A stretch of DNA of 64,000 nucleotides from Dimorphilus gyrociliatus (Eukaryota > Animalia > Annelida): positions 682,001 through 746,000 of the forward strand of contig CAJFCJ010000001.1 of assembly GCA_904063045.1 (NCBI GenBank). The letters run 5' to 3'. The notes under the pieces are model-generated. The model was not told the origin of the DNA. It saw only the letters and a list, made by a program, of their open reading frames with translations, and ran no database searches. This document shows positions 3,474 through 42,549 of the stretch, piece by piece. The stretch's first letter is position 1; every line of letters starts with the position of its first letter. The position numbers and the translations under genes were made by a program.

Positions 3474-4247
3474 CTAATACATTATAGTCTTTACGTCGTT
3501 AATCTCTTTGTTCTTTATGGCTTTTGTATATTAGAAAAGTTTGCACTTCTTTCTGAATTTGGTTTCTTTTTTTTGTTTACGACAAATATCAAAGTCGATA
3601 AGATCGTGGATGGAATAATAAACACAAAACTCATTATTATCATTATGAATGAATAGCTTATTGTAGTAGAACTAAAATTTTCTTCATACTTATGGTAAAG
3701 AGTTGAATGAATAATTATTACTATCAGTTGAAAAGTACCTGAAGAAAGAATAGTTGTTGTTTATATATAAAAAAAACTACTGAATGAAAAGATACCTACA
3801 CGATACTACGTTCAATAGCAGTAGAATTAAAAAATTTGATTCAACTGCTTCTCCACAATGATAGCTATCTTCTTCATCATCAGTTAATGCATTAAATATC
3901 CAACTATAAACGATTAAGCCAAATATATATACCAAAAATATAATCATTGCCAAAGCTTGAACAGCTTTAAAACTATGCTTTATATTTTGCGGATAGTGCC
4001 AATAGCAATGATCAAGTGTACAAGCTTTCCATAGTCCTATTTGAAAGGTATCCGTACCCCATATGTATTCTATTCGTGCTTTATACCAATGATTGGTTGA
4101 CCATCCAATGATAAAAAATAAAAGAGATATTAGAAATACAATCAGGTTCAACGCCAATCCTTTAGAAAGTTTCAATTTCTTATTTCCTATGTTCAAAACT
4201 TCGTATTTAAAGAGAATGTCTACAACCTTATTGTTTTGGTCAGCCAT
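3474..4247 (-). CDS. Claudin/PMP22/EMP-family four-TM protein
   Basis: W...GLWKAC-x4-C first-loop signature. Phase-1 intron 3739-3799 joins an exon encoding TM3/TM4 (TFQLIVIIIIH...SYSFIMIIMSFVFII) ending TAG at 3474. Confidence 0.8.
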
Positions 4248-30171: not shown

Positions 30172-32727
30172 CTACGTAATCCTTTCGAGTGTTGGTGAAA
30201 AAACGGTTAAATACGATTCTCCGTGACCAACATACAACCTATGCTTATGGTCATCGTAGGCCAAATATGTTGTATCTTTGAACTGAAATGGTATTTTTCC
30301 AATTATTTCACCATGTTCATTAAATATTAAGGTTTTTTTTTCTAGTCCTAATAAAAAATTGTTTCTAAATGAACATATCGATCTCAATCCACTTGGTTGA
30401 AGATTACACTTGTAAAATTTCTTATCTAAGTATAGCCAGATACTTTCATAATCATAAATGATAATTTCCTTATTATATTCATTATATGTTAATCTTGTCT
30501 TTATTTATTGTTTGTTGATAGTAAAAGAAAAGACAAATCTTATAATCATAAGCAATAAACATAAATTAATTAATCATGATTTATCTATTCTTTCATCAAT
30601 GTACATTTTTTGGATTTAAACAACTCGGAAGTTTCTCCTTCCACTTTAATCTTTTACATTTCGCTGTCCAACAAAAAAGAGACCAATCATCATAATCCAT
30701 CTTTCCTATAACAATAATTGTATTGTCTGGTAGGCAGGCGACAGATCTGACATCGTACATATTATAGCCAACAGTTTGTAAGGAATATGGTGGTTTTAGA
30801 TAATGTATTTGTCCTATCTCATCTTGATTTACCGTAATAACCATTATATATGTTCCACAATACGAGGATGAACAGCTGACAATATTTCCTGAGTGTAAAG
30901 TTCGAATTTGGCCAATTTCACCTGAAACTGTTATCTGAAGTGAAAGTAATTTTCCCCTTTTCAAAACAGTTTCATTTTTAATAATAAGAACAACTAACTC
31001 TGGAGTAACTGATATAAATGATACCAATCCTTCAAATTCTATTTTATTTGTTGATATGTAATCTTCTTCATCAAATTCAACATTATAAAAATCCTTTCCG
31101 GAAATTTGAGCAACGGCGTCATTTTTAAGCGGAGATAGATTTTTCATTATTGATATTCCAGTGGAATTTTTCAACAGTTGATTCTTAAGGATTTTTTCGC
31201 GGATTGTATAATCCTTATTAGGTAATCTTTTATTATCATCTGTAAGAATCAATTCATTTTCCGACATAGCGTCCATACTTTCGGAAGATAAGCAAAGTAG
31301 AAAAGGTAATTTCGATCTTTTTCTTTTTTCTGTTTTCCCCCTAGATTTGATAGAAAGTAGTTTGGATGTATAGTTCGACGACTTCTCCTCATGTTCACTT
31401 ATTCTATATGGTACACATACACACACATATATGTATATATATATATATATCTATATACTGTATATATATATAAAATAACGATTTCTGTCAATATAACCTT
31501 AAATCTTTAGCTGAAAGGACACTTTCCATTTGATGGTTACCAACTTCCTTTGGAATTAATAGCATATCACTCATCCGCGGAGGTTGCTCTTTTAATATTT
31601 GATTGCTAAAACTAGGAATCGTTATTTCAACGTTTTCTGTTTGTTTCTCCATAATGCTAAACTTCTTAAAGCTATTTTCAATTGATTCTAAATTAGAGCT
31701 AGAACTTTTGGAATCATTTCTTTGATGCAATAATCGCTTTTCTAAATCCCTACTCGTGGAAGATTTTTGCTTATCATTACTGAGTTCGTACAGCTCTTTG
31801 TCTAGTTTATCAGTTGTAAGTTTAATTATAGTAAAATTGGTTGTTTCTAATGGAACTGGTATAAGTTGAACTTTTCGATTTTGCAAAGGAATTGGATTTT
31901 CAATAAACGATATTTCATTCGTTAGTTTTTCACAAGTTTCCTTGGTAATTTCATGATATTTAGCATCCGTTATCAAGTAAATAATATAATCATATAAGTT
32001 TTGTACTTTCCATAAATCATTCGATATTGCATGTAAATATTTTGATTCTTCTTTACTCATTCCATCATATATTTCTTTTAATTTGTTTAAGATATCTCTT
32101 TCTTCATAATCTATGCTATTCATTCGATCTTGAACCCATTTTTTCAAATTGGATCTTTCATTTTCAAAATGGGTTCTAGCTGTTTCAAATACTGTAGTTT
32201 TACTAGCTTTTCTCGACGATTCTACATCTGATATAACTTTACGATAATTATCCATCTTAATTTGTAACTTATTCTTAACGTGGCTTAGTTCGGAAGATCT
32301 AGTTTGACCTAATTGGGCTAGGTCATCAAATTTATGATCTAAATGACCACATTGGGTACATACTTTGCATATAGCAAGACTGCAGTCAATACACCATAAA
32401 TGGCATACGCTTTCCGGATGTCTAGGACACTTTGGTAATCTTTCGGATAAAAAATTATCATTATTATGATTTTCATTAATTAGGTAAATAATCTTATGAT
32501 TTTTCATATTTTCTGATGAATGAATCTTTTCAAAAAGAGGCAAACATAATTGGCAAACATTGTGATCGCAATTTTCGCATCTTACAGCAGCTATACCATG
32601 ACTAGATATCAAATCACAGGAGGCCTGTTAAACGTGAACTATACTATTGAAGTTTATAGAATTCTGTCTAATTTATAATAGATATATATATATACATATA
32701 CAAAAAAATGAAAACCTCGTTCATCAT
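30172..32727 (-). CDS. B-box/coiled-coil protein with C-terminal beta-propeller-like region (TRIM-like, no RING seen)
   Basis: B-box1 (CENC..VC..C), B-box2 (CPRH...LWCIDCSLAICKVC...HLDH), long coiled coil and beta-rich C-terminal exons. Phase-compatible introns join ORFs 31488-32612, 30596-31426 and 30172-30387. First exon tentative. Confidence 0.72.
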
Positions 32728-41340: not shown

Positions 41341-41728
41341 TCTCGTGAAAGAACAACTTCCTTAAGAAAGGCTTCTCTTCACTTGAAATATATCAGCGCC
41401 TCCTATGGGTTCTTTAAAATAGACTATCAACCTATTCTATCTTTAAAGTCGAGCTGCTTATATCTTAAAGCGTATAGTAGTTTCTTTTTATCATATATGT
41501 AGTGAATGCTCTTAAGAATTATGTATATTGCTAATTTTTAAGATGAAAATCAGTATGCAAATTTATTAATTTGCAAAAAACAGATTTATATAAAATTTGA
41601 AAGACAAAACTGGTTGAGATTTATCAGAATAAAGACTCGTATACTGTATAATAACAGGTATATAATAGCATAATGATTATCAATGTTAATAATAAATAAT
41701 AAATAGTAATAGGTTAATCTGTACAAAA

Positions 41729-41793
41729 TGACTAGAGATGACACTCAATGAAATGGGAAAATGTTTACAAAGCATGACTAGATTGTAACACTC
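41729..41793 (-). promoter_or_regulatory. Two miR-279-family 8mer target sites in the Snail 3'UTR
   Basis: The plus strand reads TGACTAGA-GATG-ACACTCA (41729-41747) and TGACTAGAT-TGTA-ACACTC (41775-41793). The minus-strand mRNA is therefore complementary to miR-279 (UGACUAGAUCCACACUCAU) at the seed and 3' region. Confidence 0.75.
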
Positions 41794-41938: not shown

Positions 41939-42549
41939 CTAAAAACTACAAGTTGCTTTATGCCTTATTAATAAGGATAGTCGAGAGAAGGATTTGGAGC
42001 ATACTTGACAGCTATGTTTTTTTACAGTTTCATGAGTTTGAAGATGAGATCTGAGATTTGATCTGTCAGCAAATGCTCTTGAACATCGGTTACACGTAAA
42101 AGGTTTTTCACCGGTATGGGTTCTCATATGTCCTTGCAATAACCAAGGACGAGAGAAGGCTTTATTACAAACTGGACATTTACACGGAAGGGTATGCGTC
42201 TTTACATGCATTTTTAATGCCCCAATTGATTGGTAACCTTTGCCACAAAATTCGCAGAGCTTTTCTTTTTTTTCTTTTACTTCTATATTTCTTTCAATTT
42301 TTGCCAATAAGCTCAAGTTCAAAGCAGCTTTAGTTGGACTCATATCAATTTTAATTGGAATGTTTTCCTTCTCTTCCCAGAATCTCCAGGGTCTAATTCT
42401 CAAATCAAGAGGTTCTTCTGTGAGAATTAAATACGTATTAAAACAATATCTTTAATGTAAGAATAAAAATGAAAAATCTTACCTATAGACTCGCAAAAGT
42501 CATAAAGAAGGTTTCTCCTCGGAACACCGATCATCTCCGAACAAGACAT
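41939..42549 (-). CDS. snail: Snail-family C2H2 zinc-finger repressor (4 fingers)
   Basis: [42 protein letters not shown]...[15 protein letters not shown] is diagnostic. A phase-1 intron joins MSCSEM...ESI to EEPLDLR. Start codon tentative. Confidence 0.9.

Follow-up and report, generated by a model that had tools for sequence, protein, structure and literature searches.

In Drosophila, the Snail-family gene escargot and nerfin-1 are the key targets of miR-279/996 in the specification of CO2 neurons (PMC4456407). The repression of escargot by miR-279, which the preliminary description of the locus analyzed here had put forward as established, is borne out by that study (PMC4456407), the regulation is known to restrict neuronal fate (PMC4456407; PMC6961396), and for the miR-279 site in esg, conservation in Tribolium has been predicted (PMC6961396). 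The miR-279 family itself has been called ancient and was reported in Capitella and Lottia (PMC4238352), and the lophotrochozoan miR-279-3p reads ugacuagauccacacucaucca, the Biomphalaria form being identical to lgi-miR-279 of Lottia (PMC7328434). Here, a candidate annelid counterpart was analyzed in a stretch of 64,000 nucleotides from Dimorphilus gyrociliatus (assembly GCA_904063045.1, contig CAJFCJ010000001.1), hereafter the window. As in the fly and, by prediction, in the esg gene of Tribolium, the same seed family would act on a Snail-family zinc-finger repressor via sites in the 3'UTR; compared with fly escargot, however, the annelid gene appears to be a divergent paralogue, and the other sampled spiralian Snail genes lack the composite sites. 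The annelid sites carry long 3' pairing.

Seed pairing combined with 3'-supplementary pairing is exemplified by the let-7 sites in C. elegans lin-41, and such supplementary pairing strengthens binding and can discriminate between microRNAs that share a seed. The annelid sites are likewise tandem and combine the seed with a helix centred on nt 13-16 of the microRNA across a small loop, but their 3' helix, with 6-7 bp from nt 12, exceeds the 3-5 supplementary pairs of typical targets (PMC10899785). They also resemble the triggers of target-directed microRNA degradation (TDMD), such as Cyrano for miR-7, HSUR1 and m169 for miR-27 or the Dora-dependent triggers of Drosophila, in their seed pairing, in a central loop that is left unpaired and in six or more contiguous 3' pairs from nt 12-13. 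In 12 of the 13 validated triggers, the contiguous 3' pairs number 6 or more and in many cases begin at nt 12-13, and the 3' hybridization energies range from -9.6 to -17.1 kcal/mol (PMC10899785).

The features of the locus, in mRNA order, are the following.

42484..42549, minus strand: inferred first coding exon, with the ATG at ~42549 and followed by a GT...AG intron of ~66 nt, as read from the sequence

41939..42417, minus strand: last coding exon (exon 2) of the Snail-family gene, with four C2H2 fingers and the stop codon TAG at 41941-41939

41775..41793, minus strand: site B (proximal), mRNA GAGUGU-UACA-AUCUAGUCA, pairing with nt 1-9 and nt 12-17 of miR-279

41729..41747, minus strand: site A (distal), mRNA UGAGUGU-CAUC-UCUAGUCA, with an 8mer (nt 1-8) and 7 contiguous pairs at nt 12-18

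41598..41605, minus strand: miR-71 8mer GUCUUUCA, within the conserved tail block that ranks second in length (41608-41594)

41562..41567, minus strand: AATAAA poly(A) signal, the only one between the Snail stop and the gene for a G protein-coupled receptor (GPCR)

The protein searches were performed with exon 2 alone. Generic C2H2 fingers only were recovered by the domain search (Pfam zf-C2H2, 6e-22), while the exon 2 protein matched human SNAI1 (3w5k_B) in a single colinear stretch of 119 residues and nearly all the named proteins among its word-search matches were Snail/SNAI. The colinear Snail-type finger block, the SNAI1 match and the Snail/SNAI homologues place the gene in the Snail family, as had been proposed at the outset. 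No protein identical to the window Snail (41939-42549, minus strand) was present among the database candidates of 87-276 aa, although a second D. gyrociliatus Snail, DgyrCDS13005 from the same assembly, did appear among them; the window gene may thus be missing from the public annotation or be modelled differently there. The next gene downstream codes for a rhodopsin-type GPCR (41340-40366).

The closest protein to the window Snail is P0001 (83% identity), whose gene lies on Logan contigs of three runs (SRR23372216/228/229). In the corresponding locus, L001, the gene order is SDHB-RPL34-Snail-GPCR, and both SDHB and GPCR were matched to the corresponding positions of the window. A further protein, P0003 (locus L004), is sister to the window Snail and P0001 in a tree that resolves this small clade only (support 97/96); L004 may be a paralogue or come from another organism in the sample, as it was found in the same run as L003. 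The tree gives this long-branch clade no resolved position relative to escargot or to the other spiralian Snails. The exon/intron layout is also seen in L001, the first exon is homologous to the SNAG-bearing N-terminus of P0003, and the fingers number four in the window Snail vs. five in P0003. The SNAG motif (MPRSFL...) is absent from the window Snail and also lost in L001 (MSFTTMVGVPRRNL, at 3561-3627) but kept in P0003 (MPRSFLIGASRRNL), so it appears to have degenerated in the lineage of the window. All three have retained an EPLDLR motif, which resembles the PxDLS motif that binds CtBP.

The two elements were read directly on the plus strand as TGACTAGA GATG ACACTC, followed by A at 41747 (site A, 41729-41746), and as TGACTAGA TTGTA ACACTC (site B, 41775-41793). 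The tandem of TGACTAGA, spacer and ACACTC noted in the preliminary description is present, but the 4-nt spacer given there for both copies is true of site A, that of site B being 5 nt long, or 4 nt only if nt 9 of the microRNA is taken to pair with the T at 41783. In the sense of the mRNA the elements lie on the minus strand at +146..+164 (site B) and +192..+210 (site A) past the Snail TAG, between the stop codon and the AATAAA as originally placed, and the position of this signal implies a predicted Snail 3'UTR of ~400 nt with both sites included. No ATTAAA was found between the Snail stop and the next gene.

The miR-279 sequence against which the elements had been aligned agrees with the published lophotrochozoan miR-279-3p (PMC7328434). 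The microRNAs of D. gyrociliatus in MirGeneDB are predictions only, and nothing was found on miR-279 in the genome paper of the species. The 8mer UCUAGUCA, with perfect pairing to nt 2-8 and an A opposite nt 1, is found on the minus strand at 41736-41729 and 41782-41775. Upstream of it, the contiguous pairing extends over nt 12-18 in site A and nt 12-17 in site B, beyond the 3-4 pairs over nt 13-16 that define supplementary pairing, and is separated from the seed by short loops of 4 nt (target) vs. 3 nt (microRNA) in site A and 4 nt vs. 2 nt in site B. The duplex with miR-279 reached -19.3 kcal/mol for site A, an energy attained in 0 of 2000 shuffles of the upstream part (median -10.3), and -18.9 kcal/mol for site B, attained in 3% of the shuffles (median -13.4), while the 3' helix alone (RNAduplex) contributed -9.4 kcal/mol and -8.4 kcal/mol, respectively. 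The geometry initially read by eye, i.e., an 8mer seed and pairing to nt 12-17 across a small central loop, thus holds at both sites. On the mRNA strand, the 161-nt region folded less stably than 199 of 200 shuffles (z = +1.87), and the sites are therefore expected to be accessible.

Within the window, TGACTAGA occurs 7 times (2.1 expected), and the remaining copies (10135, 13596, 21139, 32599, and 56310) have neither 3' pairing to miR-279 nor a hairpin. The composite GAGTGT-N3-7-TCTAGTC has exactly 2 matches in 64 kb, both at the Snail tail, and was found in 0 of 100 dinucleotide shuffles, a comparison in which sites A and B may be non-independent if they are copies of one duplicated unit. 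The TGACTAGA copy at 32599-32606, with its target sense on the minus strand, does not lie in a 3'UTR but overlaps the beginning of an ORF (31488-32612) that is cysteine-rich and B-box/RING-like.

The tail of L001 offers an orthologous comparison. Protein identity between the window and L001 is 89% for SDHB and 70% for the GPCR, so silent positions are expected to be saturated, and the two Snail tails align poorly overall. Site A is nevertheless contained in an exact block of 23 nt, TGAGTGTCATCTCTAGTCATTTT (L001 4410-4432), the longest one shared between the two stop-to-GPCR intervals, while in shuffled tails the exact blocks were ≤15 nt in 500 of 500 cases. Site B corresponds to L001 4330-4348, with 26 of 32 ungapped identities (GAGTGTTA[C/T]AATCT[A/G]GTCA); in L001, an A is replaced by G, which leaves a G:U wobble at seed position 5, and the U that precedes GAGUGU supplies a seventh 3' pair. 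The second-longest block has 15 nt, TTTGTCTTTCAAATT (window 41608-41594, L001 4574-4588), and contains the miR-71 8mer GTCTTTCA, for which the published miR-71 was used (PMC7328434). An unbiased ranking of the conserved tail blocks hence yields seed matches to two ancient microRNAs, miR-279 and miR-71, and since the second-best block is an 8mer for the latter, the conserved islands of this tail seem to behave as microRNA sites.

The same two-site design recurs in the sister gene L004, where TGAGTGT-AATAC-TCTAGTCA and GAGTGT-TAAA-ATCTAGTC-T are located at +244..+320 past the stop; the pairing nucleotides are kept, while loops and flanks differ from those of the window. Across the six sites of the three genes, GAGUGU is identical in all and UCUAGUC in five, the sixth being the one with the wobble, and these segments are complementary to miR-279 nt 12-17 and 2-8, respectively. 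The two sites are spaced differently in each gene (46 nt in the window, 80 and 57 nt in L001 and L004, respectively). Site A, as the top island of the orthologous tail, and the recurrence of the two-site design in L004 uphold the earlier reading of the elements as conserved targets, and the comparison shows, at the level of sequence, purifying selection on the pairing nucleotides. In L004 (2731-2830), the A-like and B-like units stand in reversed order relative to the window, and after them comes a third GAGTGT, to which no seed match is joined. The arrangement of the units suggests an older array of repeats that would have been remodelled by gain and loss.

Taken together, we consider it probable that the elements are two functional binding sites for the miR-279 family, located in the 3'UTR of a Snail-family repressor gene that is divergent and restricted to its lineage. 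The predicted regulation of Snail by miR-279 would be of an ordinary kind, and the sites are very probably real; we infer that miR-279 is made in the species, that the sites are within the mRNA, and that repression follows. Through the 8mer and the long 3'-supplementary helix from nt 12 across a small internal loop, each site would be a high-affinity target of miR-279-loaded Argonaute, and the canonical miR-279, which carries ACACUCA at nt 12-18, would probably be favoured over seed-sharing paralogues. The bound Argonaute could then recruit the usual deadenylation and translational-repression machinery, leading to less Snail protein in cells that express miR-279, and the two sites, being 46 nt apart, might act additively or cooperatively. 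If so, the locus provides a testable microRNA-target pair, with cross-species evidence of selection in hand, in a spiralian, a group in which almost no targets have been validated.

An alternative that we regard as unlikely is that the sites are TDMD triggers, in which the seed and the extended 3' pairing expose Argonaute to ZSWIM8, so that the Snail mRNA lowers miR-279, either alone or besides being repressed. Such a role had been raised as a possibility in the preliminary description, and its pairing side stands: the layout fits, with an 8mer, an internal loop and 7 (site A) and 6 (site B) contiguous 3' pairs from nt 12, as in validated triggers, and the conservation extends beyond the seed into loop and flank, like in some known triggers. 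The energetic side did not hold, as -9.4 kcal/mol, while touching the validated range, and -8.4 kcal/mol are both weaker than every validated trigger, site A falling just short of the weakest one listed (-9.6 kcal/mol), a borderline outcome given that the energies in the review may have been calculated differently. Moreover, the 3' end of the microRNA (nt 19-22) is unpaired in six of the six sites, the upstream flank is not conserved, and the mRNA of a transcription factor is unlikely to be abundant enough as a trigger. The sites are best described, on present comparisons, as unusually strong 3'-supplementary sites bordering the trigger architecture, and this position at the boundary makes them a potential natural test case for the threshold between the two.

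It is similarly improbable that the blocks serve another factor, for instance an RNA-binding protein, or function at the DNA level, in which case their complementarity to miR-279 would be a coincidence. The exact block of site A, including the loop CAUC and the flank UUUUGUACAG, exceeds the length needed for pairing with the microRNA, which may hint at an additional or different binding factor, and the flank recurs after site B in L001; its UGUA core is Pumilio-like. In L004, however, flank and loop differ, and yet both segments that pair with the microRNA stay at a compatible distance, and the nucleotides that are invariant across the six sites are precisely the complements of miR-279.

Still more doubtful is a two-way switch, in which miR-279 represses Snail and a strongly transcribed Snail mRNA in turn destroys miR-279 by TDMD; were it true, the miR-279/Snail-family link of flies would represent an ancestral protostome circuit surviving in a compacted annelid genome. 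We also judge it very unlikely that the elements are a functionless chance match of seed and 3' segment that was tandemly duplicated. When all conserved microRNAs and 3'UTRs are considered, one 8mer plus a 6-nt 3' match is roughly estimated to arise a few times per genome, and local duplication would yield the two copies, but chance is opposed by the top rank of site A among the conserved islands at a divergence where the remaining tail has ceased to align, and by the reappearance of the sites in a third gene whose loops differ.

There is next to no likelihood that the elements are plus-strand microRNA genes of the miR-279 family, since, even though the plus strand reads like mature miR-279/286 and its 22-mers start with UGACUAGA and contain ACACUC like family members, the 161-nt plus-strand region folds no better than shuffles (z = +0.63), the per-site folds have no complementary arm, neither element takes part in an inverted repeat, and the putative matures would be merely 46 nt apart. 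Genes for mir-279 precursors, for which a stable hairpin of ~60-90 nt with the mature sequence in one arm and a match in Rfam are expected, were accordingly rejected: no hairpin was found on either strand, in agreement with the missing complementary arm remarked upon initially, no inverted repeat was present, and Rfam yielded nothing when the whole window was searched at the gathering threshold, nor anything relevant in the local search at E up to 10.

Returning to the two candidate target sites, the preliminary description had further interpreted them as part of a deeply conserved miR-279-Snail circuit, a claim that was not sustained by the wider sampling. No 7mer or 8mer match to miR-279 was present within 4 kb downstream of the second D. 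gyrociliatus Snail (L005), one Lottia and one Capitella Snail-family gene, and an escargot-like gene of Mytilus had one seed-only 8mer at +1113. These named loci gave no enrichment of miR-279 matches. In 78 metagenomic Snail-family loci, a weak test as their host taxa are mixed and include non-protostomes, one 8mer was found in 89.5 kb, i.e., approximately the level of chance, and of the 88 loci fetched in all, 84 lack the composite pattern. Given the site-free Snail genes elsewhere, the annelid link to miR-279 may be convergent. The candidate sites would nonetheless extend the link between miR-279 and Snail-family genes from fly and beetle to an annelid lineage, and thereby provide a data point on the persistence of microRNA-target relationships, not only of microRNAs. 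The sole metagenomic 8mer (L027, Ga0194135_10006015) is located at +775 past a Snail-type stop, with a GAGTGA 10 nt upstream that could form a supplementary helix of 5 bp.

Two further signals were noticed downstream of the sites. A 7mer-A1 match to miR-1175 lies at 41621-41615, just upstream of the miR-71 block, and is a full 8mer (GAATCTCA) in L001. In the interval from the poly(A) signal of Snail to the GPCR start, the 12-mer ATAGGAGGCGCT (in the context CCCATAGGAGGCGCTG) is conserved at window 41395-41406 and L001 4887-4898; by eye, it looks like the core motif of CTCF, and CTCF motifs were described in the D. gyrociliatus genome paper as the commonest promoter motif of the species.
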